Below are positions 16,217 to 64,000 of a stretch of 64,000 bases of DNA, piece after piece. The position numbers were made by a program, and so were the translations under genes. Location of the stretch: sequence record MW349129.1. One strand, given 5' to 3'. The notes beneath the pieces were generated by a model. That model was not told where the DNA came from, ran no database searches, and was given only the letters and a program-made list of their open reading frames with translations. The first letter of the stretch is position 1. Each line of letters begins with the position of its first letter.

Positions 16217-17068
16217 GTGAGTGAATATTATATGGCAAATAAAAAGGATCTAAGTGAGTTAGAAAGAATTATAAGTAGTATGGACACTATCGATGTTAGA
16301 GAAGTTTTTAAAGATGTAAGAAGTTCAGATAATGTTAATGAAGAAGATGATTTAAATTCATCTAAATATAAAGGTGATATTAAAGGTTTAGTAACTAAAG
16401 AAGAATATGAAAGTCTTCCATATTTAGGTAAACGTGCTATTCAGTTTATGGAAAATATTGCAGCTGATAAAGAAAATTTAGACTTTGAATCTTATTTTGA
16501 AAGATATGCAAAAGCATATGGTAAAGATGAAATTGATTCATTTAAAAACACTATGTATAGACTTAAAAGTAGTAAGGTTTTTACAATACAATCATTAATG
16601 ACAATTACTGAAGCTATTGATTATAAAGTTCATATAATAACTGAAGAATTTAAAGGTATGGATGAATTAAGATTATATGAACCTAAACGTAAAGTTAAAT
16701 CTTCTAGATTTATGGGTAAATTAAAATTTGATTTAATGCCAGATGTTATATATGAAGACTTTATATTAGAGTTTGTAGAGTTTTTAGAAGAATTAGGAAA
16801 AGAAGGATATACTTTTGAGATGTTATTCGGAGAACTTGAAAATAATTCTGATGAGAAGAATCCTATAAGTAAAATTAAATCATCTATGGATAAAATGATT
16901 AAACAAGGTAAACTAACTTGGAAGACTATGGAAACAATAACAGAATCTTTAGGTATGAATATTAAAGTTGATTTTATAAAAGATGTTATTGATACTGATG
17001 AAGTTAATAAAATAGATGCTTCTAATCAAATACGACTAGAAGACGATAATATAATTCATAAGAAATAA
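16217..17068 (+). CDS. protein with two XRE/Cro-like HTH-type repeats, putative regulator
   Basis: Internal repeat: SFKNTMYRLKSSKVFTIQSLMTITEAIDYKVHI versus KIKSSMDKMIKQGKLTWKTMETITESLGMNIKV. Confidence 0.45.
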   Translation: MSEYYMANKKDLSELERIISSMDTIDVREVFKDVRSSDNVNEEDDLNSSKYKGDIKGLVTKEEYESLPYLGKRAIQFMENIAADKENLDFESYFERYAKAYGKDEIDSFKNTMYRLKSSKVFTIQSLMTITEAIDYKVHIITEEFKGMDELRLYEPKRKVKSSRFMGKLKFDLMPDVIYEDFILEFVEFLEELGKEGYTFEMLFGELENNSDEKNPISKIKSSMDKMIKQGKLTWKTMETITESLGMNIKVDFIKDVIDTDEVNKIDASNQIRLEDDNIIHKK

Positions 17069-17075
17069 AATATAT

Positions 17076-17105
17076 CCCCTAACCTTATTAATTTAAGGTT
17101 AGGGG
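17076..17105. terminator. bidirectional terminator, repeated palindrome family
   Basis: CCCCTAACCTTATTAATTTAAGGTTAGGGG between convergent genes. The 28-nt core is identical at 39791 and 44734. Confidence 0.8.
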
Positions 17106-17123
17106 AATTGTATTATTTTTTTT

Positions 17124-19034
17124 TTATTCTGTTGTAGTTTCTTCTGGTGTTTCTTCTACTTGTGAAGTAGAAATAGTAACACTAACATCTTTACTTACAC
17201 TATCAGAAGTAACTTTAACTTTAGCAGTTCCTGCAGCTTTAGCAGTTACAAGACCACTGTTGTTAACTGAAGCAAAATCAGTTCCTTCAGTAATTGAGTA
17301 ACTTACAGGATTTCCTTCAGGATCTGTAGTTACTGTTAATTGTTGAGTTTCATTATCTTTCATATCAACACTATCAGGAGTAACTGTTAGACTTTTAGTC
17401 TTTACTCTAGTTACATTAACGTTAACTGTCTTGCTAACAGAATCAGAAACAATCTTAACTTTAGCAGTTCCTACAGCTTTAGCAGTTACAAGACCACTAC
17501 TATTGACTGAAGCAAAATCAGATCCTTCTGTAATAGAATAACTTACAGGGTTTCCTTTAGGATCAGTATTTACTGTTAATTGTTGAGTTGATTCTGCATC
17601 TATGTTAACTTCTTCTGGAGTAACAGTTAGACTCTTAGTTTTTACTCTAGATACATTAATAATAACATCTTTACTTACACTATCAGAACTTACTTTAACT
17701 TTAGCAGTTCCTACAGCTTTAGCAGTTACAAGACCTTTATTATCAACTGAAGCAAATTCAGATCCTTCAGTAATAGAGTAACTTACAGAGTTTGTAGATG
17801 GTTGAATTTTAACGTCTAACTGTTGAGTTGATTCTACATCTATGTTAACTTCTTCTGGAGTAACAGTTAGACTCTTAGTCTTTAAACGGCTTACATTAAC
17901 CTCTACATTTTTAGAAACATCATCTGATTTAACTGTAACGTTTGCAGTTCCTTCAGAAATACCAGTAATATTTCCGTTATTATCAACTGAAGCAAATTCA
18001 GAACCGTCTTTTAATTCAAAGCTTACTTTTCTTCCTTCTGGTTCAGTAGTAACTTCTAATTTCTGAGTTTGTTCTGCTTCAATATTAACTGTCTCTGGAG
18101 TAACAGTTATACTTTTAGTTTGATTAATGCTTTCAAATTTTCCATCTTTAGGATCATAAACAGAATATTCAATTTTCTTATCGATTTCGTTTTGTATAGT
18201 TTCCTCATCTAAAATGCGGATATTGAAATTAACAATATTATCTTGAATGTTTCTCTCAATTACTTTAACTAAGATTTCACCAGTTTTACTAAAGAATAAT
18301 AAACGATTTTTATCTGATTGATATCTAGCATAACTTTCATCACTAATATTTACAGATAATAATTGTAATAGATTTTCTTTAGCTACAGGAGTAACTTCTT
18401 TAGTATCGAAATCTTTATAACCTAAGATTTTATCTAAAGGTAATACAGATTCTTTAAGAACGTTAATATCTTGTTGTAATTGAACAAGACGACCTGTAAA
18501 TTTACCGTATTCTTTAACTTTAATAAAGACTGAATCTTTAACACGTTCAAATAAGTTTTTATGACCTTCAGAAATAGCAATATCATACTTTTCTGAAGCA
18601 TCTTTAGGGAAGTATAATTTAAGTTCATATTCTTCATTAACTTCTAAATCAGAAGTAGGTAAACTTAAAATTTCAGATTTAACATCTTTAGCAGTATAAG
18701 TTTTAACTACAGACTTATCTGAAAGTTTGATTAAGTCAAATTTTAATAATCCTAATACATCACGAGCATCTACAGGATTAATATAGAAAGGTACATTAAT
18801 AAACTTACCAGTTTCTCCTTCAGATTTGAAGTAAACTGTTCTTCTATCATATTTAATTTTACCAGTTTCAGGAAGAGGTTGAACATCAGTAACAGTCCAA
18901 CCAGCTTGTTTTAAGCTAGCTAGATCATTACTAGAAAGAATAACGTTTTCACGAGGTCCACGTTCACCTAATCCTAAAAATGGAATTAATTTTTCATCTA
19001 ATAATTTTACTTTAAAGTAGTTAGTAGTAGCCAT
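17124..19034 (-). CDS. virion surface protein with four tandem Ig-like (Big_2) domains
   Basis: Four ~80 aa repeats KSLTVTPE...QQL.V...P....VSYSITEG..FASV...GLVTAKA.GTAKVKV.SDSVSK. Confidence 0.85.
   Translation of the reverse strand: MATTNYFKVKLLDEKLIPFLGLGERGPRENVILSSNDLASLKQAGWTVTDVQPLPETGKIKYDRRTVYFKSEGETGKFINVPFYINPVDARDVLGLLKFDLIKLSDKSVVKTYTAKDVKSEILSLPTSDLEVNEEYELKLYFPKDASEKYDIAISEGHKNLFERVKDSVFIKVKEYGKFTGRLVQLQQDINVLKESVLPLDKILGYKDFDTKEVTPVAKENLLQLLSVNISDESYARYQSDKNRLLFFSKTGEILVKVIERNIQDNIVNFNIRILDEETIQNEIDKKIEYSVYDPKDGKFESINQTKSITVTPETVNIEAEQTQKLEVTTEPEGRKVSFELKDGSEFASVDNNGNITGISEGTANVTVKSDDVSKNVEVNVSRLKTKSLTVTPEEVNIDVESTQQLDVKIQPSTNSVSYSITEGSEFASVDNKGLVTAKAVGTAKVKVSSDSVSKDVIINVSRVKTKSLTVTPEEVNIDAESTQQLTVNTDPKGNPVSYSITEGSDFASVNSSGLVTAKAVGTAKVKIVSDSVSKTVNVNVTRVKTKSLTVTPDSVDMKDNETQQLTVTTDPEGNPVSYSITEGTDFASVNNSGLVTAKAAGTAKVKVTSDSVSKDVSVTISTSQVEETPEETTTE
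17160..18120 (-). repeat. 4 x 240 bp tandem Ig-domain repeat
   Basis: GGAGTAAC(A/T)GTTA recurs at about 17376, 17616, 17856 and 18096, a period of 240 nt. Confidence 0.9.
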
Positions 19035-19057: not shown

Positions 19058-19624
19058 TTATTTTTCTAATAGTAAATCAATTAAATCTTGTTTACGAGCA
19101 TTTTTATTATACTCAATTCCTTTAGAATCTAATTCTTCTTTAAGCTCAGCTACAGTGAATTCATTTAAATCTTCTTCTGTAACTTCGACTTCTTTAGAAT
19201 CTTTTTCTTCTTCAGAATCTTGCTCTTCTACTTTTTCATCGATAGTAGAATCTTCTTCAGAACTTTGTTCTTCTTTAGTTTCTTCTTTTACTTCGTCTGA
19301 TACTTCGCTATCTGTTCCTTCATCCACTTGCTTCTCTTCGCTGCTGCTTTCATCATTGCTCTGTTCCTCTTGTGATTGAGTATCATTTGATTCAGAAACT
19401 GTTTCATTTTTATCTTCACTCTTATCTTCTTTTTTATTTGATTTATCGCTTGGATATACATAGTCTTCATCAACAATTGTTACTTGTAAACCTAAACGTC
19501 TAAATAAACGAATTTGTGAACCTGAAGCACGGAAAGGTTTAACAAAAGGACCTTTACCTTTACCAGGTACGAATGCTTTTTCATTAATAATAATGAAATT
19601 ATTATCTTCATTGAAATTTAACAT
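19058..19624 (-). CDS. protein with N-terminal PGKG.GP module, acidic linker and C-terminal HeH/LEM (SAP/Rho-N-like) domain
   Basis: The C-terminus DLNEFTVAELKEELDSKGIEYNKNARKQDLIDLL fits the helix-extension-helix pattern. Confidence 0.7.
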   Translation of the reverse strand: MLNFNEDNNFIIINEKAFVPGKGKGPFVKPFRASGSQIRLFRRLGLQVTIVDEDYVYPSDKSNKKEDKSEDKNETVSESNDTQSQEEQSNDESSSEEKQVDEGTDSEVSDEVKEETKEEQSSEEDSTIDEKVEEQDSEEEKDSKEVEVTEEDLNEFTVAELKEELDSKGIEYNKNARKQDLIDLLLEK

Positions 19625-19670: not shown

Positions 19671-19699
19671 AAGGAAGGATCTTATAAAAATCCTTCTTA
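19671..19699 (-). terminator. terminator after the CHAP lysin gene
   Basis: AAGGAAGGAT / ATCCTTCTT inverted repeat at the stop codon, with an A-tract on the + strand side. Confidence 0.55.
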
Positions 19700-20494
19700 A
19701 CTAAATGTTCCCCATGCGTTACCAATACGTTGTCCTTTACCATTTGATTTACCAATTGGCACGTATACATATTGTCCTTTAAATTTACCTGAAACCCAGA
19801 TAAGACCATCAAAGTCTTGGATTTCTTCGTATTTAATAGAGTCGCCTTTTTTCATGAATGGACCTGTAGGCCATCCAGTCCATGGACCATTTTTACGAGT
19901 AATAATTCCTGAAGCAACATTACATTTGAAAGTAGCTTTTTCAGTTTTCCATAGAATACCTGCTGAATTACGTTTCCATTTAGCAGATGTAACAGCTTTC
20001 TTAGGAGCTGCTTTCTTAACTACTTTTTTCTTAGGAGCTGCTTTCTTAGTAGATGCTTTCTTAGTAGGAGTACTACTAAAGGCTGGACGAATTACACCCC
20101 AGAATCCTGTATAATCATGGAATACTTTAGCTGCGGGTGAACCATTGCTACCTGCATTAAACCAGTTCTGGTCAATTGAATAGAAATTGTTTAAGTTAGC
20201 TGAAGTGATAATACCTGTATGACCATAAACATCATATGGAGGATTGGCCCAAATAGCTATATCTCCTGATTGAGGCAAGAATGATGGAGTATTTTTAATA
20301 AGTTTCCATCCTTCAGGCATTGTATTATTTTTAAGATCTTTAGCGTTACCCCAAGGCCAGAATTTTCCATCAGTTAAATAATTACAATAACCGATAGTCA
20401 AATCCATACATTGAGCCCCATAAGCACCATCCATGTCAAGTCTACGACCAATACGATTATTAACCCAATTCAAAGCTTGAGTTTTAGTTTTCAT
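19697..20494 (-). CDS. endolysin, CHAP + SH3b (SH3_5)
   Basis: CHAP motifs DMDGAYGAQCMDL and YGHTGI; Lys/Ala/Pro linker; staphylococcal SH3b WKRNSAGILWKTE...GLIWVS....YVP.G..WGTFS. Confidence 0.92.
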   Translation of the reverse strand: MKTKTQALNWVNNRIGRRLDMDGAYGAQCMDLTIGYCNYLTDGKFWPWGNAKDLKNNTMPEGWKLIKNTPSFLPQSGDIAIWANPPYDVYGHTGIITSANLNNFYSIDQNWFNAGSNGSPAAKVFHDYTGFWGVIRPAFSSTPTKKASTKKAAPKKKVVKKAAPKKAVTSAKWKRNSAGILWKTEKATFKCNVASGIITRKNGPWTGWPTGPFMKKGDSIKYEEIQDFDGLIWVSGKFKGQYVYVPIGKSNGKGQRIGNAWGTFS

Positions 20495-20625: not shown

Positions 20626-20659
20626 TATAAAATTATAATTTACATTATAGAACCATTTA

Positions 20660-21610
20660 TTAGCTAAATGTTCCCCATGCTGGACCAATACGTTTACCGT
20701 TACCATTTGATTTACCTACTGGTACATAAACATATTGCCCTTTAAATTTACCTGAAACCCAAATGTATCCGTTAAAATCTTGGATTTCATCATATTTAAT
20801 AGTATCACCTTTAGACATACGAGGACCTTGAGGCCATCCAGTCCATGGACCATTTTTACGAGTAATAATTCCTACAGATACACCGCATTTGAAAGTAGCT
20901 TTTTCAGTTTTCCATAGAATACCTGCTGAATTACGTTTCCAAGTAGTTGAAGTTTCAGTACTTGTTTTCTTAGGTTTAGCAGGTGCTTTAGTTGTAGTAG
21001 TAGATTTAGTCGCTGTTGAAGTTTTAGCTGTAGAAGTAGCACCATTTTTCATATAAGCTAGAACCTTTTTATCTACATTAGAAACACTACGAGACATACC
21101 ACATGCCGCTAATAAGTTACCTGGATCTTGTTTGTCTGCTTGAATATCTTGATGACCTGGCATATTTGTACTTGCATTAACTTTATATTCTTTACATAAG
21201 AAAGCAAGAATACGACAATAGTTATCAAATGATTTTAATGAACGACTTCTATTAGAGAAGTAACATCCTTCAACACCAATAGCACCGTCATTAGCATCAA
21301 TACCATACCAAGCATTATCAGTTGGTGTATTGTACATAACATGCCATGCTTTTTCATCTAAAGGAACACAGATAATACATTCTTTATCATCAACAAAAAT
21401 ATGAGCTGATGCTGTATAGTTCCAATCAATATTATATGAATTACGATAGTAATCAACATTATTTTGAGCTGTTGTGTTAGGGTTTCCTGTGTCATGAGCA
21501 ACAATAAATTTAGGTCCGTTAAGCTTATCTCCAGCTCTACGAGTACCTATTGGTAAAAAATCAGTATAAACAGGAACACCGTTCCATGTACCGATATGTT
21601 TTTTAGCCAT
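20660..21610 (-). CDS. N-acetylmuramoyl-L-alanine amidase (Amidase_2) + SH3b
   Basis: IVAHDTGN, ASAHIFVD, EKAWHV, AIGVEGC and PGHQDIQADKQDPG; C-terminal SH3b nearly identical to that of the CHAP lysin. Confidence 0.92.
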   Translation of the reverse strand: MAKKHIGTWNGVPVYTDFLPIGTRRAGDKLNGPKFIVAHDTGNPNTTAQNNVDYYRNSYNIDWNYTASAHIFVDDKECIICVPLDEKAWHVMYNTPTDNAWYGIDANDGAIGVEGCYFSNRSRSLKSFDNYCRILAFLCKEYKVNASTNMPGHQDIQADKQDPGNLLAACGMSRSVSNVDKKVLAYMKNGATSTAKTSTATKSTTTTKAPAKPKKTSTETSTTWKRNSAGILWKTEKATFKCGVSVGIITRKNGPWTGWPQGPRMSKGDTIKYDEIQDFNGYIWVSGKFKGQYVYVPVGKSNGNGKRIGPAWGTFS

Positions 21611-37830: not shown

Positions 37831-39783
37831 ATGATAGGTTCAGAGATTAGAAAATCATTAAACGAGAAATTTGGTTATCATTATAAATTCTTATTAGAAG
37901 ATTTTAAGAAAGATTATGATTTAAATAAGGATACAATTATGGTAACTAAAGAAGCTAGCGATATTACAAAGGAATATAGAATAAAATTATTAAAGTATAC
38001 TAAAGACATTGAAAAATTAGATAAAGACTTTAAGAAAGAGGAAGAAGAATTAAATATTAGAAAATCTAGAATTTTTAATTTAGATGAATTAGGTTTAGAT
38101 GAAGACCTTAGAAATATCTGTAAGTATATAGATAGTACTACTAAATTAAAAGTAAAGGTTAGAGAGTATAAAAAAGAAAGTAAAGAAAATATTGAATTCT
38201 TTTACAAAAATTTTGCTAATTATACTTATAATAGTGTAATATATGATATGAGTAATTTTAAACCATCAACAATTAGATCTAATCAGAAAGTTATATGCAG
38301 AAAACATGGACCTTTCTTTACTACTCCAGTAGATTTCTTTATAAAGAAAAAAGGATGTCCAGTGTGTGAAAAAGAAACAGAGGAAGAAAAGAAAGACACT
38401 AGTTGGAAGGATGAATTCATAGAAAATAACAATAAAAAAATATATCAAGAAGTAAAAGAAGAGAAAGAAAAAGAAAATAAAAAATCTAAAAAAGAAAAGG
38501 TAGATGTGAAAAAAGAAAATAAAAAACTTTTAGATGAAATATTAAATCCACCTGAATTAGGATATTACAGAGAACCGGATAAGATACCTAATAATGAAAA
38601 AGAAAATGAGAAATTCTTAAAGAATATTAAAGCTATAGATAACGATAAAGTTGAAGAATCTAAAGAAGTTCAAAAACCAAAAGAAATTGTTAAACCTAAA
38701 TTAAATAAAAAGTCAGTTGATCAAATAATAGGAGACGATAATACTAATTTAGGTAGAAAGATTAAATATATAAATAAAAATATCTACACGGAAAATGAAA
38801 GACAAGATTTCTATAAAAAATTAACTGATCGTAAACATGGTAAAAATAAATATAAAATTGACAAATTCAGACCTAAGACTATCAAAGAAAAACAAGAAGT
38901 AATTTGTCTTAAGCATGGTCCTTTTAAAGTAACAGCTGAAGAATTATTAATTAAAGGCAAACAGTGTCCTAAATGTTCTTCTACTAGCACTTCGATAACA
39001 GAAACTTTTGTAAGGGAGTACATTCAAAGTTTAGATTTTGAAGTTAATAATTATGAAATAGAAGATTTAATCAGACCTTATGGTGTTGATATAGTTATAG
39101 AAAATTTAAAATTAGCTATTGAAGTTCAAGGTATTAAATATCATTCATCTGAAACAAGATCAGAATCTTCAAATAAATACCATCAATTAAGAAAATTAAA
39201 AATGTTAGAAAATAAAGGTTATCATTTATTGAATATATATGATGATGAAATCCCTAATAAGAATAAAGGAATTGGCTGGGATAAATTTGGTAGATTTTTA
39301 TCTGAATTAATGATGTTTGATAAAAGATTTGATATTGAAGAAATGGATACAAATTCAATAAAGATAGATACAATTAGTTATTACAAATTCAGAGAATTCT
39401 TTGAAAATTCTAGACAAAATTTTGTTACTGGAGATACAGAGTATAAAGGTGTAGTTTATAAGAATAAATTAATCTCAGTGTTCTCATATAATAAAGAAAC
39501 AAGAGAATGTCATAACTATCATACTATGACAAATAATAAATTTGATTTGGAATTAATTAAAAGAAAATACAAAGATTTAAAATTTGTAGTTAAAAAAGAT
39601 TCTTATGTAGCGTATAAAATGAAAAGCTATGAAATGTTACCAATAGCAGAAACGGAACCTGACTTCTGTAACTTTTCAAAGACCAATGGAAATAGAAAAA
39701 ATAACTATATAAGACAAAAAAGAAAGGATGAAAATGATAAAAACAAAGTATATAACTGTGGAAATATAATTTTTGTATTTTAA
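37831..39783 (+). CDS. free-standing homing-endonuclease-like protein (two C-x2-HG.F...CP.C Zn modules plus Vsr/PD-(D/E)xK domain)
   Basis: CRKHGPF...GCPVC and CLKHGPF...QCPKC, then E...YI, VDIVIENLKLAIEVQGIKYHS and LLNIYDDE. Confidence 0.7.
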   Translation: MIGSEIRKSLNEKFGYHYKFLLEDFKKDYDLNKDTIMVTKEASDITKEYRIKLLKYTKDIEKLDKDFKKEEEELNIRKSRIFNLDELGLDEDLRNICKYIDSTTKLKVKVREYKKESKENIEFFYKNFANYTYNSVIYDMSNFKPSTIRSNQKVICRKHGPFFTTPVDFFIKKKGCPVCEKETEEEKKDTSWKDEFIENNNKKIYQEVKEEKEKENKKSKKEKVDVKKENKKLLDEILNPPELGYYREPDKIPNNEKENEKFLKNIKAIDNDKVEESKEVQKPKEIVKPKLNKKSVDQIIGDDNTNLGRKIKYINKNIYTENERQDFYKKLTDRKHGKNKYKIDKFRPKTIKEKQEVICLKHGPFKVTAEELLIKGKQCPKCSSTSTSITETFVREYIQSLDFEVNNYEIEDLIRPYGVDIVIENLKLAIEVQGIKYHSSETRSESSNKYHQLRKLKMLENKGYHLLNIYDDEIPNKNKGIGWDKFGRFLSELMMFDKRFDIEEMDTNSIKIDTISYYKFREFFENSRQNFVTGDTEYKGVVYKNKLISVFSYNKETRECHNYHTMTNNKFDLELIKRKYKDLKFVVKKDSYVAYKMKSYEMLPIAETEPDFCNFSKTNGNRKNNYIRQKRKDENDKNKVYNCGNIIFVF

Positions 39784-39789
39784 ATAATA

Positions 39790-39819
39790 ACCCTAACCTT
39801 ATTAATTTAAGGTTAGGGT
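39790..39819. terminator. bidirectional terminator, repeated palindrome family
   Basis: ACCCTAACCTTATTAATTTAAGGTTAGGGT between convergent genes. Confidence 0.8.
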
Positions 39820-39840
39820 ATTTTATATTATTTTTTTTTT

Positions 39841-40524
39841 TTATTGAACTATTTTATTTGGTTTAACTTCACTTTTCATTTTGATTTCAGTTTTAACTTT
39901 GTCAAGAACTTCCGATTCATATAAAGAAGGATCTTCTTCATATTTTTTAGTCATTTTCTTAACAGCGGCTAATTTATTTTCCAATGGTGCTTCTAATTCT
40001 ACTTGATTAAATAATCCTTCAAAATTACCGAAAACAAATTCTTCATTTAATGGAATAAACAGATCTCCATTATGTGCTAACTCATGGGCAGTATAAGATA
40101 AAGGCACAATTCCTATATTACCTTCAAAATGCATTTTAATAACATCTTCAGCTATTTTAAAACTTTCATATGATTTTTTATACTCATAATTAGTTTTAAG
40201 TTTTTCTCTATAGCTAGATACTATATCATATAAAGACAATGGGTAGTGGTGCATTTCCATAGTTAAACGCTTATCATCATTTATATCAACTTCTGGTATA
40301 AATTTACATTTAGTGAGGTCCATTTCAGTTTTCAAAGCTTTAATAAATGATTTGTATTCATATGAGCTTCTAACTATTTTTTCAATATATTTATTAAATG
40401 TCTCTTCAGACTTTATATCATCTTCATTATTATACATTTCAAATTTCTTTGTTTCATCTACATTTAATTCTACTGTTTCGATTAATTTTGGAAGGTCTTT
40501 TTTATCTACTTTTGGCATTTGCAT
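39841..40524 (-). CDS. protein with HNH-like (His-Me finger) motif
   Basis: C........MEMHH...GIVPLSYTAHELAH; late promoter. Confidence 0.45.
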   Translation of the reverse strand: MQMPKVDKKDLPKLIETVELNVDETKKFEMYNNEDDIKSEETFNKYIEKIVRSSYEYKSFIKALKTEMDLTKCKFIPEVDINDDKRLTMEMHHYPLSLYDIVSSYREKLKTNYEYKKSYESFKIAEDVIKMHFEGNIGIVPLSYTAHELAHNGDLFIPLNEEFVFGNFEGLFNQVELEAPLENKLAAVKKMTKKYEEDPSLYESEVLDKVKTEIKMKSEVKPNKIVQ

Positions 40525-44241: not shown

Positions 44242-44726
44242 ATAATGTAATTATACTTAGTGTTTTATCTATAGCATTCTTTTTAACTACTTTAACATTT
44301 ATATTTTTAACAATTCATTTTAGAAAAGAATTAGTTAAAAATATTAAAATGAATAAAAATTATAGAGATAAAATAGCTATTTTAGAAAAGCAAACAACTG
44401 GAAAAGATGTATTAGATTCATTAAATTCTATGATCGATGATTTTTTAAAACCGACTTATGATTTAACTATAGAAGAAACATACATGGATTTAAAATTAGA
44501 CAATCCTTTAGTTTCAAATAGAAATATAACTATATCTGAACAAAGGAAAAATGTTATACTTGAAGATGTATTTGAAAAATTCATGAATTATCTATCTGAT
44601 GATTTTAAAAATAAATTATCTTTAATATATAAAGAAGATGAAATAGAAAATATGGTGCTAGATATAATGTACTATAAATTAACTGTATATATAAAAGAAC
44701 GTAACGAGTTACAAAAAAATTCTTAA
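44235..44726 (+). CDS. membrane-anchored hypothetical protein
   Basis: N-terminal TM segment VIILSVLSIAFFLTTLTFIFLTI. Confidence 0.7.
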   Translation: MLDNVIILSVLSIAFFLTTLTFIFLTIHFRKELVKNIKMNKNYRDKIAILEKQTTGKDVLDSLNSMIDDFLKPTYDLTIEETYMDLKLDNPLVSNRNITISEQRKNVILEDVFEKFMNYLSDDFKNKLSLIYKEDEIENMVLDIMYYKLTVYIKERNELQKNS

Positions 44727-44732
44727 AAATAT

Positions 44733-44762
44733 CCCCTAACCTTATTAATTTAAGGTTAGGGG
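44733..44762. terminator. bidirectional terminator, repeated palindrome family
   Basis: Identical 30-mer to 17076-17105. Confidence 0.8.
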
Positions 44763-44782
44763 TTTATATTATTTTTTTTTTT

Positions 44783-45550
44783 TTATAATAAAACATTTAT
44801 TAAATCTGTCAAAAATCTCAATTGATTTTTATAAGACAAATCTTCAATTCTTACTTCTTCATTAATATCATCTTCAATATACATTTCCAACGTATCCATC
44901 TCAATGATATATTTATCTTCAATTATATCTTTATAATAACCAGAAGTTAAATTATAATTAATCATATTATCTTTAAATAATAGAAGTTTCTTATACAGAT
45001 CCATTTTATCTTTCTTTTTATCTTCCCAGAGACACTCTATTAAAAATTTAAACATATAATCAGTATGATGTTCTTTAACACCATTTTGATAACCTTTTAC
45101 GTCTATTTTATTTTGATATAAGTTTATATAGTGTTCTTTACCTAATATATTTATATAATTATCATACTCTTCACTTTCAGCAAATCTAACATGTTTTGAT
45201 ATCTTTAAATTATTACATTTTTTACCAATAACAAATATAGCATCTTTTTTAATACTTAAAATGTCACTATCTTTAAGATTATTATTCTCTATAAAAATCT
45301 TTCTAGCTATTTTAAAACCATCCATTAATGCTTTATTCATATCTTTATTATTCTTTAACATCTTGCCGATAATAACATTTCTTTCGTATTTTTGAGTATT
45401 TCGTAATTTATTATATTGTTCTTCATTAAGATAACCTGAATCATATAATATATTCATACCAGCTGATTTAATATCATATTCAGTAATTACAGTATCTTTA
45501 ATATATCTTACGTCTGATGTGTAATTAGTTTTCATGTATAAATTAGACAC
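44783..45550 (-). CDS. small protein with DNA-polymerase-palm-like motifs
   Basis: ITEYDIKSAG resembles motif A and ILSIKKDAIFV resembles motif C. The function is inferred. Confidence 0.4.
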   Translation of the reverse strand: MSNLYMKTNYTSDVRYIKDTVITEYDIKSAGMNILYDSGYLNEEQYNKLRNTQKYERNVIIGKMLKNNKDMNKALMDGFKIARKIFIENNNLKDSDILSIKKDAIFVIGKKCNNLKISKHVRFAESEEYDNYINILGKEHYINLYQNKIDVKGYQNGVKEHHTDYMFKFLIECLWEDKKKDKMDLYKKLLLFKDNMINYNLTSGYYKDIIEDKYIIEMDTLEMYIEDDINEEVRIEDLSYKNQLRFLTDLINVLL

Positions 45551-60025: not shown

Positions 60026-61552
60026 TTAACGTTTTAATAATTTTTCAAGCATTTCTGAAGTTAAATCTTTTTGATTATTCTTAACTTTGTAAGCACCAAG
60101 TTTACTTTCTTTAATAACTTCAAATTTATTATGATCCGGTAAATATTTATAAACTAATTCTCTAGTTTGATCTAATACAATAAAGTCTAATAAGAAGAAT
60201 TCATTATAAATTTTCTTAGCAGCTCTACGATCAGATAATAAGTCTACGCCAGTTTTACGTTTAACTTCTTGAACTTCATCAATAGTAATCATTAAAGCTG
60301 TTGTTGGAATATAGTTAGCTTTAGCTGACTTAGCAATTCCTGCAGCTTTATTAACTGTATAAAGAGAATTTAATTTGTTCCAGATAGCTCCAGAACGTCC
60401 TCTTTTAGAATCTTGTGCAATTTTCTTAACTTTATCAGCGTCTAATAATAAATCTTTAACTAAACGTAATTCACCTGTAGTAAATTTAACTAATTTAGTT
60501 ACTAAGTTTGAACCACGAGATTTATCAGAAAGATAGAAAATGATGTCTTCAGTTTTAACAACATGAACTACTGTTTTAACACCAAACTTAACTTCTTTAG
60601 GAACTAATACTCCTGGTATAGGTTCACCTTTACTATCAGTTCCCATAAAAGTAACTTTAGAAGAAATAGTTGTAGGTAAAGAAGAATTTATTTTATCTTT
60701 ATCAATAACTACTTTTGCACCGAATTGTTCATCTACATCATTTTTAGCTCCAGAAATATACGAAGAAGACAAATCATTTAAAAATGCATCTAAAACACCA
60801 TCTTCAATTACCATGAAATCTTTCCCATGATCATCTTTGTGTTTTTCACCGTTTAATAGATATTTAATGTTTCTTGAAGGGTCACTTTCTTTAAGATTTT
60901 TAAATTCATATCTTTCAGTTCTAATTTTATCTTTCTCTATTTTATTTCCATTTTTATCTTTTTTACCCTCTTCTACCGTTACTATTTTAACTTTTAAATC
61001 ATAGGTATTTGAGAGCTCTTCTTCTTTTTTAGATTTAAGAAAATCTGCTTCTTTAAAATCAAAATCATAAGTGGTACCTGTATGACCACCTTGTACTTTA
61101 ATTCCTTCATTTAATAATTCTTTCATTTCTTCTCTAGTGATAGTCATATCATTTAAAGAATTCATGTTAAATTTTTCTTCAGGAGTTTCTAATAAATAAT
61201 CATTAGATCTTTTAATATCTCCTTTTGTACTTTCAGCTAAATTTACATTATTATGCAAATCAGCCATAAATGAAGTAGGGTCCTTTGGATTAAATTCTTG
61301 TAAAGGAGAATTCGTTAATACAAAATCAAACTCAAAAGCTCTTTCTAATTCTAACTGATTCCTCATTAATTCAACTGTGTCTTGTTCTATAGTGTCAGAT
61401 GTAACTAAAGGAAATTGTAAGATGAAATCTCCTGCTCTAGATTTCATGGAACGTTTTCTTCTAATATCTTTTTTATAATTTCTTTTTACGCTACTTGGTC
61501 CTATATCTTGTAAGAGTCCTATTACATCTGTAAGTAAATTTACTTTGGCCAA
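60026..61552 (-). CDS. virion (head) structural protein
   Basis: The start is re-called to TTG 61552 because of the AAAGGCGG SD and a late promoter at 61587-61598, which lies inside the track's longer ORF. LxE-type processing sites are present. Confidence 0.6.
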   Translation of the reverse strand: MAKVNLLTDVIGLLQDIGPSSVKRNYKKDIRRKRSMKSRAGDFILQFPLVTSDTIEQDTVELMRNQLELERAFEFDFVLTNSPLQEFNPKDPTSFMADLHNNVNLAESTKGDIKRSNDYLLETPEEKFNMNSLNDMTITREEMKELLNEGIKVQGGHTGTTYDFDFKEADFLKSKKEEELSNTYDLKVKIVTVEEGKKDKNGNKIEKDKIRTERYEFKNLKESDPSRNIKYLLNGEKHKDDHGKDFMVIEDGVLDAFLNDLSSSYISGAKNDVDEQFGAKVVIDKDKINSSLPTTISSKVTFMGTDSKGEPIPGVLVPKEVKFGVKTVVHVVKTEDIIFYLSDKSRGSNLVTKLVKFTTGELRLVKDLLLDADKVKKIAQDSKRGRSGAIWNKLNSLYTVNKAAGIAKSAKANYIPTTALMITIDEVQEVKRKTGVDLLSDRRAAKKIYNEFFLLDFIVLDQTRELVYKYLPDHNKFEVIKESKLGAYKVKNNQKDLTSEMLEKLLKR

Positions 61553-61586
61553 TGTATTTCCGCCTTTCTTTTTCTTATTATTTTTA

Positions 61587-61598
61587 TAAAGATATGTT
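61587..61598 (-). promoter_or_regulatory. late promoter AACA-N6-TA
   Basis: AACA-TATCTT-TA, 35 nt upstream of TTG 61552. Confidence 0.6.
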
Positions 61599-61634
61599 TG
61601 ATCATGAGAATCAATAAAAAAGTAAAAAAAAAAT

Positions 61635-61676
61635 AAATTTAGATATCGTATCAACTAAGACACGATATCTAAATTT
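61635..61676. terminator. hairpin terminator
   Basis: AAATTTAGATATCGT / ACGATATCTAAATTT flanked by A- and T-tracts. Confidence 0.75.
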
Positions 61677-61726
61677 TTTGTGAGTGAGTTATTTTTGAAT
61701 ATCCATCATATTCGAGAAGTTCTATT

Positions 61727-61885
61727 TTAAATTCTATCATAATTAGATAAAATCTCTTTATTTCTAAAATCTTCGGAATCATTCCTTATTACATAAGGTT
61801 CATTTCTTACATTTTCACTAACATTTTCATTAAGTAATTCGATAAAACTTTTTTCTTTCTTTTCTGATACATTATCTTTATTCAA
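61727..61885 (-). CDS. small protein (52 aa, MNKDNVSEKKEKSFIELL...)
   Basis: Read by hand; GGGGAGAG SD, TTG start. Confidence 0.5.
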   Translation of the reverse strand: MNKDNVSEKKEKSFIELLNENVSENVRNEPYVIRNDSEDFRNKEILSNYDRI

Positions 61886-61940
61886 TTTTTGAATCTCTCC
61901 CCATTTATATTACTACTATTAAATATATTACATAAATATG

Positions 61941-62160
61941 TGTGAACGGACTAACCACCTTAAATACAATAGATATGACTGTTTGATTGTTGACCTAATG
62001 TCATTTGGTAATCTTTTTATTGTTTAACTCACTCTGTTCACATTTTGTTATTTTATACTTCCATTCATTTTAGTATAGGGGATCTAAAATGGATCGGCAT
62101 ATTTATATATCTTAGTAGAATATAGTATATTAATGAGAAGTTAATTTCTTAACTTCTCAC
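61941..62160. ncRNA. candidate structured non-coding RNA
   Basis: ORF-free. Nested stems TGTGAACGGA/TCTGTTCACA, ACAATAGA/TTTATTGT and ATGAC/GTCAT; second hairpin CATTTTAG/CTAAAATG; terminal hairpin TGAGAAGTTAA/TTAACTTCTCA. Confidence 0.45.
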
Positions 62161-62162
62161 TT

Positions 62163-62180
62163 TTATAATATATATTTAAA
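62163..62180 (-). promoter_or_regulatory. early promoter motif
   Basis: The reverse complement is TTTAAATATATATTATAA. Confidence 0.65.
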
Positions 62181-62220
62181 AACTATTTACAAAAAAAAAG
62201 AAGAATCTTGAGATTCTTCT

Positions 62221-62730
62221 TTATCTATAAAAACCTGGATTATCTTTTTTCAGTTGTGCTATATAAGCATCCACTCCGTAAAAATGACCATCGTCATCTT
62301 TTTCATAAGGATTAGAAACAGAAATTGGTATATCCTTTTCTTTAGCTTTGAAAGCTATCATTGAGTTAGCTTCATAAAATAGTTTATAATGTTTCATTCT
62401 ATTTATATGTCCCCAACTATAACCATTTCTTTTTAAATAATATTTAGCTTTTTGATAGTCGGACATTACATCTTTATTAAATTGTAATTTATCTAAACCT
62501 TCTTCTTTCATAAAATTATCTTTTTTATTTTCTATTTCTTTTTTTCTTTCATTAATTTCACGAAGTTCTTCTTTTATTCTCTCTTCTTCTATTTTTGCTT
62601 CTTCAATTCTCTTTCTTTCTCTTTCTTTTGCTTCTTTAATTCTCATTCTTTCTCTTTCTTTTTCTTCTTTAATTCTTTTTTGTTTTGCTATTCTTCTATC
62701 ACGTTTAATTTCTTTAATTTTATTTAACAT
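62221..62730 (-). CDS. Lys/Arg/Glu-rich coiled-coil protein
   Basis: 169 aa, AAGGATGG SD. Confidence 0.75.
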   Translation of the reverse strand: MLNKIKEIKRDRRIAKQKRIKEEKERERMRIKEAKERERKRIEEAKIEEERIKEELREINERKKEIENKKDNFMKEEGLDKLQFNKDVMSDYQKAKYYLKRNGYSWGHINRMKHYKLFYEANSMIAFKAKEKDIPISVSNPYEKDDDGHFYGVDAYIAQLKKDNPGFYR

Positions 62731-62861
62731 ATTAATCCATCCTTTTTTATTTTTTTTTATCTATACATATTTACTTCCATTTGAATTTCTCTTCAATAAC
62801 TTCTTTTACTTCTTCTGATATTCCGCTAGAATCCACTTTCTTCTCTTATTTCCTACTCTAC

Positions 62862-62990
62862 TCACTGCTCAAAGTCTGTTTCTCTAATAAGTCTAATAAG
62901 TTCTTCTTTTTCTCTTTCTTTTTCTTCTTTAATTCTTTTCTGTTTTGCTTTTTCTATTTCTTTAATAATTTCTTTAATTTTGTTTAACAT
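62862..62990 (-). CDS. 42 aa truncated paralog of the 62221..62730 N-terminus
   Basis: MLNKIKEIIKEIEKAKQKRIKEEKERE... versus MLNKIKEIKRDRRIAKQKRIKEEKERE...; same SD cassette. Confidence 0.55.
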   Translation of the reverse strand: MLNKIKEIIKEIEKAKQKRIKEEKEREKEELIRLIRETDFEQ

Positions 62991-63023
62991 TTTAAATCCA
63001 TCCTTTTCTTTTATATTCTTCTT

Positions 63024-63143
63024 TTACTTCGTTTGACACTTCGCTAGCTGTTCCTTCATCCACTTACTTCTCTTTTTTGCTGCTTTCATCATTGCTTTTT
63101 TCATCTTGCGATTGTGTATCATTTCATTTATTATCTCTTTCAT
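63024..63143 (-). CDS. 39 aa basic peptide MKEIINEMIHNRKMKKAMMKAAKKRSKWMKEQLAKCQTK
   Basis: Has its own AAGGATGG SD and an upstream early promoter. The DNA is a diverged copy of about 19285-19400 read in the alternative frame. Confidence 0.55.
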   Translation of the reverse strand: MKEIINEMIHNRKMKKAMMKAAKKRSKWMKEQLAKCQTK

Positions 63144-63198
63144 TTTAAATCCATCCTTTTTATTTAAATTAGTTGATTAATAACTATCAACTTCATAA

Positions 63199-63216
63199 TT
63201 ATAATATAAATTTAAA
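63199..63216 (-). promoter_or_regulatory. early promoter motif
   Basis: The reverse complement is TTTAAATTTATATTATAA. Confidence 0.6.
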
Positions 63217-63245
63217 AATTAATTTATTACGGGTAAACATGCTTT

Positions 63246-63257
63246 AACATAGCCTTA
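63246..63257 (+). promoter_or_regulatory. late promoter AACA-N6-TA
   Basis: AACA-TAGCCT-TA, 31 nt upstream of TTG 63289. Confidence 0.6.
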
Positions 63258-63288
63258 TTAAAAATAACGATTGGTGGTGTAAAAGAGA

Positions 63289-64000
63289 TTGGCTGAAGAT
63301 AAGAAAACTACGGAAGAAAAGTTTAAAAAAGCATTAAAAGAAGAGGGAGATATAAAAGAAATAAAATCCTTTAATCCATATAGAATAAAAGATAAAAACT
63401 CAGAGATATTTAATAAAGGATTACCTTTTATTTTCATAACAGCTCCTAGAATAAATCTAGTAGATGAAAATATAGGAAGAGAAAGTTTCTTTCTTTATTT
63501 AAAATCAGTTAAACCTGATTTATTAAAAAGCTTAAATTTTAGTAATAATGGAGCCTTAAGCTCAGGTAGACCTTTCATCCCAATCCTTTCAAATAGATTC
63601 ATGGGAATATCTATTCCCGATACACAAACAACAATGAAAGAATTTCATGAAACATTTTACGGTTATAAACAACATTTACCTGTAGGTACAGTTAACTCAG
63701 TTGCTGGTGGAGAAATAGCTGTAGATTTTGAAGAGAATAAAGAAATAGACGTTATACACTTAATTAAAGCATGGAGTGAATATATAGAAGGTGTAACTAG
63801 AGGTTACTTATTCCCTTCAGAAGATGCTAAAAATAAACGTTATATAGATTATACTAGTTCTATATATTATTTCTTATTAGATTTTGATGGTGAAACTGTA
63901 TTGCATTATTCTAAGTATACTGGTTGTTTCCCTATAAATGTACCTTACGATATATTCTCACAAAATATCGGTGATGATCCAGAAGTTCCTCATGTTTCGA
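63289..64000 (+). CDS. tail tube-like/baseplate tube-initiator protein (3'-truncated by window edge)
   Basis: Open frame MAEDKKTTEEKF... with PFIFITAPRINL, W.EYIEGV.RG and YSKYTGCFPINVP, which resemble T4 gp19/gp48/gp54-type tube folds; late promoter. Confidence 0.6.
   Translation, partial: MAEDKKTTEEKFKKALKEEGDIKEIKSFNPYRIKDKNSEIFNKGLPFIFITAPRINLVDENIGRESFFLYLKSVKPDLLKSLNFSNNGALSSGRPFIPILSNRFMGISIPDTQTTMKEFHETFYGYKQHLPVGTVNSVAGGEIAVDFEENKEIDVIHLIKAWSEYIEGVTRGYLFPSEDAKNKRYIDYTSSIYYFLLDFDGETVLHYSKYTGCFPINVPYDIFSQNIGDDPEVPHVS

Follow-up and report, generated by a model that had tools for sequence, protein, structure and literature searches.

ORF39 of Staphylococcus phage Madawaska: a candidate proto-gene read out of frame from a copied segment of a HeH-gene linker

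Can a phage gene be born when a piece of an older gene is copied elsewhere and read there in a different frame? The question is raised by a short open reading frame (ORF) of 39 codons, called here ORF39, which lies in a 64,000-nucleotide stretch of sequence record MW349129.1 (the window, meaning throughout the whole stretch that was analysed; its coordinates become those of the record by adding 124,000). The 2.5 kb around ORF39 are 100% identical to the Staphylococcus jumbo phage Madawaska (MW349129, 265 kb). A first reading of the window, made from its sequence alone, had proposed that ORF39 is a new gene derived from the acidic linker of a gene with a HeH/LEM domain (hereafter the donor gene), either by duplication and change of frame or by the liberation of an overprinted gene already hidden in that linker. 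The duplication is established and the copy lies behind early expression signals; we think that such an out-of-frame ectopic copy yields a likely expressed proto-gene, a reading to which we would give a probability of roughly 0.55.

The DNA copy itself is real: it is an out-of-frame duplication of a linker segment. A repeat finder applied to the whole window recovers an ungapped pair of 137 nucleotides (nt) at 85% identity (family D3, 19274-19410 and 63010-63146), the sole long-range repeat of its kind within the window. This self-comparison agrees with the sequence-only reading, which had placed the copy at 63017-63128 and its source at 19285-19400, the boundaries now being slightly wider. 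Searched against a 2.3-Gb database, the copied stretch finds the donor orthologues of phages S6 and PALS_2 (84.7% identity along 137 nt, E = 4e-35), a similarity that is far beyond chance. The donor gene, for which ten orthologues were found, carries a HeH domain (Pfam PF12949) at residues 157-185, with E = 1.8e-8 and 34.4 bits against a gathering cut-off of 28.9. ORF39 itself gives no match to this domain; what it has in common with the donor is only the DNA of the linker, and there is no protein-level homology to the donor product.

The two frames have fared differently in the copy. The main (acidic) frame of the donor corresponds to frame 2 of the copy, where it is broken by stops, and ORF39 corresponds to the donor +1 (basic) frame. 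The stops announced by the sequence-only reading, TGA and TAA, are indeed seen in the frame translations of Madawaska and of its relative MarsHill, and the copy of phage vB_StaM_SA1 (hereafter SA1) has a single stop at another codon, the acidic frame having been lost independently in the Madawaska and SA1 lineages. The basic frame, in turn, is intact as had been claimed, and the ORF39 peptide is identical to the hidden +1-frame peptide of the donor at 27 of 39 residues (69%).

ORF39 is the first cistron of a leftward early operon. Its start codon ends a Shine-Dalgarno (SD)-ATG cassette, the 19-nt string AAAGGATGGATTTAAAATG, which occurs exactly twice in the window as against 0.07 times expected by chance, and upstream of it stands a promoter motif with TATATTAT, the predicted early promoter consensus of MarsHill/AR9 (Korn et al., bioRxiv 10.1101/2020.12.14.422802); the SD cassette and the early promoter that had been attributed to the basic frame are thus both found. 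Madawaska and its relatives are AR9-like phages, which have their own RNA polymerases. In the alignment the promoter motif is kept in all relatives, PB50 included, and promoter, leader and cassette together are conserved at the level of single bases in Madawaska, MarsHill, SA1, S6, DC4, LY01 and the metagenome contig L016. It is what follows the cassette ATG that varies: ORF39 in Madawaska, MarsHill and SA1, a gp189/S6_1300-type gene in S6, DC4, LY01 and L016, so that the Madawaska ORF39 module is in effect a 153-nt insertion flanked by two cassette copies. An inverted repeat in the leader, with arms conserved and loop variable among the relatives, may stabilise the 5' end as a hairpin or bind a protein. 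There is no terminator-like site between ORF39 and gp188, the last gene of the operon, the first such site being the one at 62197-62222. To judge from these signals, ORF39 is probably transcribed and translated. No RNA run was shown to carry the ORF39 stretch in the sequencing-run search, the small transcriptomic runs X17 and X20 falling outside that check.

ORF39 is not confined to one isolate. Over the same 2.5 kb, Madawaska is 98% identical to MarsHill, about 90-92% to S6, PALS_2, DC4 and LY01, and 87% to SA1; PB50 and AH12 reach 82% over the flanking gene only. MarsHill has an intact ORF39 differing by 1 nt. The SA1 version differs at 31 of 120 nt (26%) with no insertion or deletion (indel) and the same start and stop; it is annotated in SA1 as QPI17168.1, the only entry returned by an exact-sequence look-up, and is unannotated in Madawaska and MarsHill. 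Logan contigs of three metagenome runs (X2, X7 and X25) also carry ORF39, so that the family is present in at least two genomes (Madawaska, MarsHill and SA1) besides these contigs; those of X7 and X25 have four substitutions and no indel within ORF39, and three indels in the 60 nt downstream. Wider searches added little: tblastn with ORF39 matched only the donor alternative frame in S6, PALS_2 and DC4; IMG/VR held no relative of the flanking virion gene, and a degenerate 21-mer gave chance matches only; the JGI metagenomes had no exact cassette-plus-ORF match and one syntenic contig, L016, without ORF39; and the GTDB genomes contained no further ORF39 loci. The search of sequencing runs with window positions 61500-64000 found near-identical DNA in clothing, indoor/air, chicken gut, food fermentation, soil and bird metagenome runs. 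The phage group being present in so many types of public run, its clade is therefore more widely spread than the few isolates suggest.

How could such a copy have arisen? We propose that a fragment of about 137 nt of the acidic-linker coding region of the HeH gene was copied ectopically, the likely mechanism being microhomology-mediated recombination between purine-rich tracts. The region from 62.5 to 63.1 kb has an extreme purine skew on the coding strand; donor and cassette have the string AAAATGAAA in common at the 5' junction; and at the 3' end the homology ends exactly with the ORF39 stop codon in SA1, whereas in Madawaska it extends some 14 nt beyond this codon and ends in a run of purines. 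The copy would have landed first in the hypervariable early operon, directly after the conserved leader and SD-ATG cassette. Since the junction falls within the shared string, the cassette ATG reads the fragment in the +1 frame, and the frame would thus have been set by the chance point at which that ATG met the fragment. The junction is common to all copies, as are the 5' changes (CAGTTT to GAGATA), and a single origin is favoured for this reason. The outcome would be a 39-residue polycation (+10 to +12), encoded by the first cistron of an early transcript, fast-evolving, dispensable and under weak or episodic selection at the most: a proto-gene from out-of-frame remodelling.

Selection on the basic frame is the point on which the status of ORF39 as a gene turns, and here several observations speak for it. 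In a neutral-substitution simulation, start, stop and open frame survive together with a probability of about 0.20 for the Madawaska lineage (18 substitutions) and of 0.09-0.10 for the SA1 lineage (27 substitutions). Between Madawaska and SA1, 31 of 114 positions of the ORF body differ, but only 1 of 33 in the leader and SD (Fisher p = 0.0017), and this conservation is seen even though the next gene has a cassette of its own. Along the SA1 lineage 13 residues of the peptide have changed, fewer than the expected 18 +/- 1.7, and the basic frame scores 140 (BLOSUM62) against the ancestor proxy, above spectrum-preserving permutations (P = 0.0001) and all clustering-preserving circular shifts, with the acidic frame unremarkable in the permutation tests (P = 0.05 to 0.12). 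The ratio of non-synonymous to synonymous rates (omega) between SA1 and donor is likewise lower for the basic frame (0.37) than for the acidic frame (1.22). Apart from selection, ORF39 does not have the features of a dead pseudogene: promoter, SD and ATG are all present, and not one indel separates Madawaska and SA1 in 120 nt.

Against this, the whole stretch could be a recombination scar, non-functional debris in which the ORF is open since purine-rich, T-poor DNA rarely makes stops and in which any translation is incidental; this is, in our opinion, a doubtful account, and one to be taken seriously. A stop-free basic frame is indeed likely under neutrality (0.30 to 0.44 according to lineage), and a number of results weigh against treating ORF39 as a selected, or even an expressed, proto-gene. 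The selection tests rest on three to five short sequences. In the Madawaska lineage omega is 0.58 for the basic and 0.59 for the acidic frame, with no frame preference (permutation P ~0.2-0.3); comparing Madawaska directly with SA1 gives 0.85 basic and 0.35 acidic, the differences being most numerous at basic-frame codon position 2 (15, as against 8 each at positions 1 and 3; not significant). Variation within the Madawaska clade, at about 6 non-synonymous to 1 synonymous change, equals the neutral expectation, and the 26% divergence of ORF39 lies above that of the flanking gene (14%) and below that of the synonymous sites of this gene (proportion of differences, pS, 0.44). The SA1 ORF39 (L004, 2002-2121) is, moreover, a mosaic with respect to a Madawaska-type donor, with 1 difference in the 36 positions of nt 19-54 and 20 in the 66 of nt 55-120 (p = 0.0007), which suggests recombination or local constraint and, the SA1 genome having no donor-type segment, inter-phage recombination or import of the ORF; the lineage-specific selection tests are therefore weakened. 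The X2 contig has, besides five substitutions, a 1-nt deletion at 63040, as a result of which the final five residues are different and the ORF is lengthened to 43 codons, and gp189 has a 1-nt deletion there too. At the syntenic site S6, PALS_2, DC4, LY01, L016, PB50 and AH12 have no ORF39; its neighbours are gene debris (the gp189 stump and the remnant at 62790-62836), as at a junk-accumulating locus; an exhaustive HMMER search of 1.84 billion representative proteins found no homologue at E <= 0.001; and the tree of the segment, discussed below, is a star. Nor is a perfect cassette proof of function, because the identical cassette drives the gp189 stump; the two cassettes are identical to each other within each genome, and their conservation could come from concerted evolution among cassettes. 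What the scar has difficulty in accommodating is that start and stop persist, with no indels, across 26% divergence (a joint neutral survival of about 0.02 if the lineages are independent), when the adjoining downstream non-coding DNA has three indels in 60 nt even among near-identical variants, that leader and SD are strongly kept in both lineages with ORF39, and that the changes in the SA1 lineage are conservative in the basic frame specifically. The proposal of a new gene thus stands as regards the retention of start and stop, the conserved initiation region and the SA1 constraint, but not as regards the neutral-looking Madawaska lineage, the X2 frameshift and the patchy occurrence; the frame-specific rate comparison suggested along with it is similarly divided, SA1 favouring the basic frame, and Madawaska and the direct comparison failing to do so. 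A role of the stretch as RNA (a leader, a small RNA or a structural element) rather than as a template for a peptide would fit its position in the 5' part of the early transcript, and in PB50 some 290 nt of non-coding DNA with strong predicted structure (z = -4.0) come after this promoter. We find this highly improbable for Madawaska, where the RNA of leader and ORF39 folds no better than shuffles (z = 0.24), has no Rfam match and comes from a sequence with a canonical SD and ATG.

The remaining alternatives concern the relation between copy and source. Transfer from donor to copy appears to us the probable direction, to judge from where the segment occurs: it sits within the linker of six phages, one of which, LY01, is without ORF39 and has a homologous, more diverged version (Smith-Waterman score 87, as against 28 +/- 4 in codon-shuffled controls). 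If ORF39 were the older, and the HeH linker had captured a copy of it and read it out of frame as acidic linker, one might expect a corresponding insertion, but linker lengths show no 120-nt insertion relative to the PB50 clade, in which the protein motifs (NDT, SEVS-E) align; ORF39 is also narrower in distribution, at a hypervariable locus that does not exist in the PB50 clade, and in Madawaska the homology goes on for those 14 or so nt beyond its stop into donor-coding sequence. We therefore consider the reverse direction improbable, while noting that linkers tolerate insertions, that the maximum-likelihood tree of these 120 nt is star-shaped (with LY01 and the two copy lineages radiating from a Madawaska-type donor node) and neither polarises the event nor settles the monophyly of the copies, that the PB50-clade linker aligns as protein with a DNA-level homology that is not significant (P ~0.15-0.19), and that SA1, which has ORF39, carries the segment nowhere else in its genome, the linker of its own HeH gene being shorter and not alignable. 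As for the liberation of an overprinted gene, the donor +1 frame would itself have to be a translated overlapping gene, with ORF39 as its free-standing duplicate, and to this we give hardly any credit. It is true that the donor +1 frame has its ATG and its stop at positions matching those of ORF39, and that it is open over 62 codons in Madawaska, S6, PALS_2 and MarsHill. Such openness is, however, expected from composition. Stops in the +1 frame need NTA or NTG codons (Leu, Ile, Val or Met) followed by a purine, and since such codons are almost lacking in an acidic linker with few hydrophobic residues, the frame is open: among the 42 donor residues spanned, only four Val are capable of giving a +1 stop. 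The peptide is Lys/Met-rich for a related reason, GAA and GAT codons being shifted to AAG and ATG. When the donor protein was recoded synonymously with random codons according to phage usage, the +1 frame was open over the same 39 codons in 44% of the recodings, and an ATG fell within the first five codons in 38%. There is, in addition, no SD-like sequence ahead of the internal donor ATG at 19405-19407, and the alternative peptide is not kept among the donors, having a 12-nt deletion (4 residues) in DC4 and stops in the SA1 donor, and running on as a different, longer sequence in LY01 and the PB50 clade; the donors are otherwise too alike to reveal constraint on an alternative frame. The +1 frame of the HeH gene thus shows neither openness or conservation beyond composition nor initiation signals of its own, and since it is an unconserved by-product of composition without an SD, the idea of a liberated overprinted gene finds no support. 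An out-of-frame ectopic copy placed behind early signals is the reading that we retain.

What would the peptide do, if anything? Its variants have a net charge of +10 to +12, an isoelectric point of about 10.4-10.9 and a grand average of hydropathy of about -1.1, and are rich in Lys and Met. An amphipathic helix was considered and rejected, as the hydrophobic moment is like that of shuffled sequences (P = 0.08-0.2, not above them), and a membrane or holin role is unlikely because the peptide is strongly hydrophilic. Pfam and PHROGs returned sub-threshold noise only (a holin at E = 0.04; DUF421), and the best ESM Atlas score, 0.70, was uninformative. A truncated paralogue of the N-terminus of the gp188 family was also rejected: the likeness, of the 'RKMKK' type, is compositional, and the DNA is far closer to the donor. 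A peptide function of any sort is possible on the sequence evidence, though we lean against it; if there is one, electrostatic binding to nucleic acid or to an acidic protein partner, as a soluble polycation, would seem the likeliest. That ORF39 is a truly selected early micro-protein, the SA1 derivative having outlived its source or been imported without it, we consider rather unlikely, and were it so, the polycation could act on the linker of its parent or on the uracil-containing phage DNA.

The locus around ORF39 (the features are collected in Table 1) is prone to recombination, and the gene content between the promoter and gp188 is different in every relative, the whole array being missing in PB50 and AH12. 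The remnant at 62790-62836 is a dead pseudogene fragment that meets the gp189 stump at a purine microhomology, and its presence indicates that the module was once present twice in the array. No Pfam family was found for gp188. In contig L016 (329-823, minus strand) the TGA of gp189 occurs in frame within an otherwise intact S6_1300-like gene of about 164 codons, which would mean either that the nonsense mutation predates the Madawaska deletion or that the stop is read through. The PB50 stretch without an ORF (L017, 2215-2505, minus strand) follows the early promoter; none of 200 shuffles was as stable, it has no Rfam match, and we regard it as a candidate structured early RNA.

Table 1. Position, strand and supporting evidence of the features discussed, in window coordinates
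Feature	Position	Strand	Evidence
Intrinsic terminator closing the operon	62197..62222	-	annotated terminator in record
gp188, 169 aa, last in the operon; N-terminus rich in Lys and Glu, C-terminal domain conserved	62221..62730	-	orthologue S6_1280
Remnant of a second ORF39-like/donor-like 3' end, without start codon, with a 9-nt deletion	62790..62836	-	family D7
gp189, 42 aa, truncated N-terminal piece of an S6_1300-like gene	62862..62990	-	
Second SD-ATG cassette, driving gp189	62988..63006	-	ribosome-binding site annotated in GenBank record
Full DNA copy of the donor linker	63010..63146	.	family D3 and alignments
ORF39, 39 codons and TAA, Lys/Met-rich, net charge +10, +1 frame relative to donor	63024..63143	-	
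SD-ATG cassette of ORF39; its final three bases are the ORF39 start codon	63141..63159	-	
Small inverted repeat GTTGAT-N8-ATCAAC in the 5' leader	63170..63193	-	predicted hairpin
Early (virion RNA polymerase type) promoter motif; starts the leftward early operon	63199..63215	-	perfect match to repeated window motif
Donor gene, 188 aa, with a conserved N-terminal domain, an acidic linker and, at the C-terminus, the HeH/LEM domain	19058..19624	-	
Donor segment in the acidic linker, main-frame residues ~73-115	19274..19410	-	family D3
Donor +1-frame ATG-to-TAA stretch, 39 codons, compositional by-product	19288..19407	-	

Other repeats of the window deserve a brief mention. The 636-aa gene adjoining the donor, whose orthologue in PALS_2 is annotated as an Ig-like (Big_2) surface protein, contains four tandem 240-nt repeats (17168-18127, 65-79% identical) that encode repeated 80-residue units. 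A 300-nt direct repeat at 83% identity (family D2) pairs 19682-19981 with 20645-20944, 963 nt apart, the first copy covering the 3' part of the lysin gene at 19697-20494; the title of the SA1 paper mentions two lysins. Three near-identical 62-nt copies (family D5: 17066-17127, 39780-39841 and 44723-44784), each with a perfect palindrome (CCCTAACCTTATTAATTTAAGGTTAGGG) ahead of a T-run, have the look of a terminator module used repeatedly.

The event is of a known kind, and the present case is well documented. Frameshifted duplicates in eukaryotes have reportedly been described by Raes and Van de Peer in 2005 and by Okamura et al. in 2006. In bacteria, 767 gene families of E. coli with an alternative-frame pattern have been named ORgenes, being defined by DNA homology to another gene, a different frame, a short product and presence in at least two genomes (Watson, Lopez and Bapteste, Mol Biol Evol 2021, PMC8788219). 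ORF39 shares with them its nucleotide homology to part of another gene, read in another frame, its occurrence in at least two genomes and a short, probably disordered product. It differs in that the whole of it, and not one component of a fusion, comes from an alternative frame, that its host is a jumbo phage, that donor and ORF39 coexist in one genome at 85% identity, and that the point at which it joins an already existing promoter, leader and SD cassette is visible at single-base resolution. Viral overprinting (for examples see Sabath et al. 2012, PMC3494269; Pavesi 2021, PMC8227390) is similar in that coding derives from the alternative frame of an existing gene and gives a basic, low-complexity product; it is unlike the present case in that here no single locus expresses both frames. 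The adaptive conflict of overlapping genes is consequently absent, the new frame being presumably expressed only in the displaced copy. Compared with the phage proteins with a HeH/LEM (SAP-like) domain, PF12949, the donor has this domain at its C-terminus and ORF39 is without it. The early regions of T4-type phages are said to undergo modular shuffling by PeSL elements, as described by Arbiol et al. in 2010. The operon of ORF39 resembles them in having a short conserved cassette repeated before successive early genes, with gain, loss and truncation of genes between the copies; unlike in PeSL, the repeated unit is an SD-ATG cassette and not a promoter-stem-loop, and recombination by way of the cassette is deduced here from the junctions.

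Most genes claimed to have arisen de novo or out of frame are without an identifiable source, a readable junction or intermediates, and all three are visible in this case, where some relatives have the ORF and others do not, a second copy has decayed, and the peptide shows signs of constraint in one lineage. If ORF39 should turn out not to be a gene, it would be a useful negative control, a perfectly signalled and conserved-looking small ORF that is nothing but expressed junk. If it is a selected micro-protein, it would represent an unusually clean, datable and experimentally tractable birth of a viral gene; and if translation and a phenotype were established, the locus would offer a compact model of how the accessory regions of phages turn recombination debris into small early proteins.

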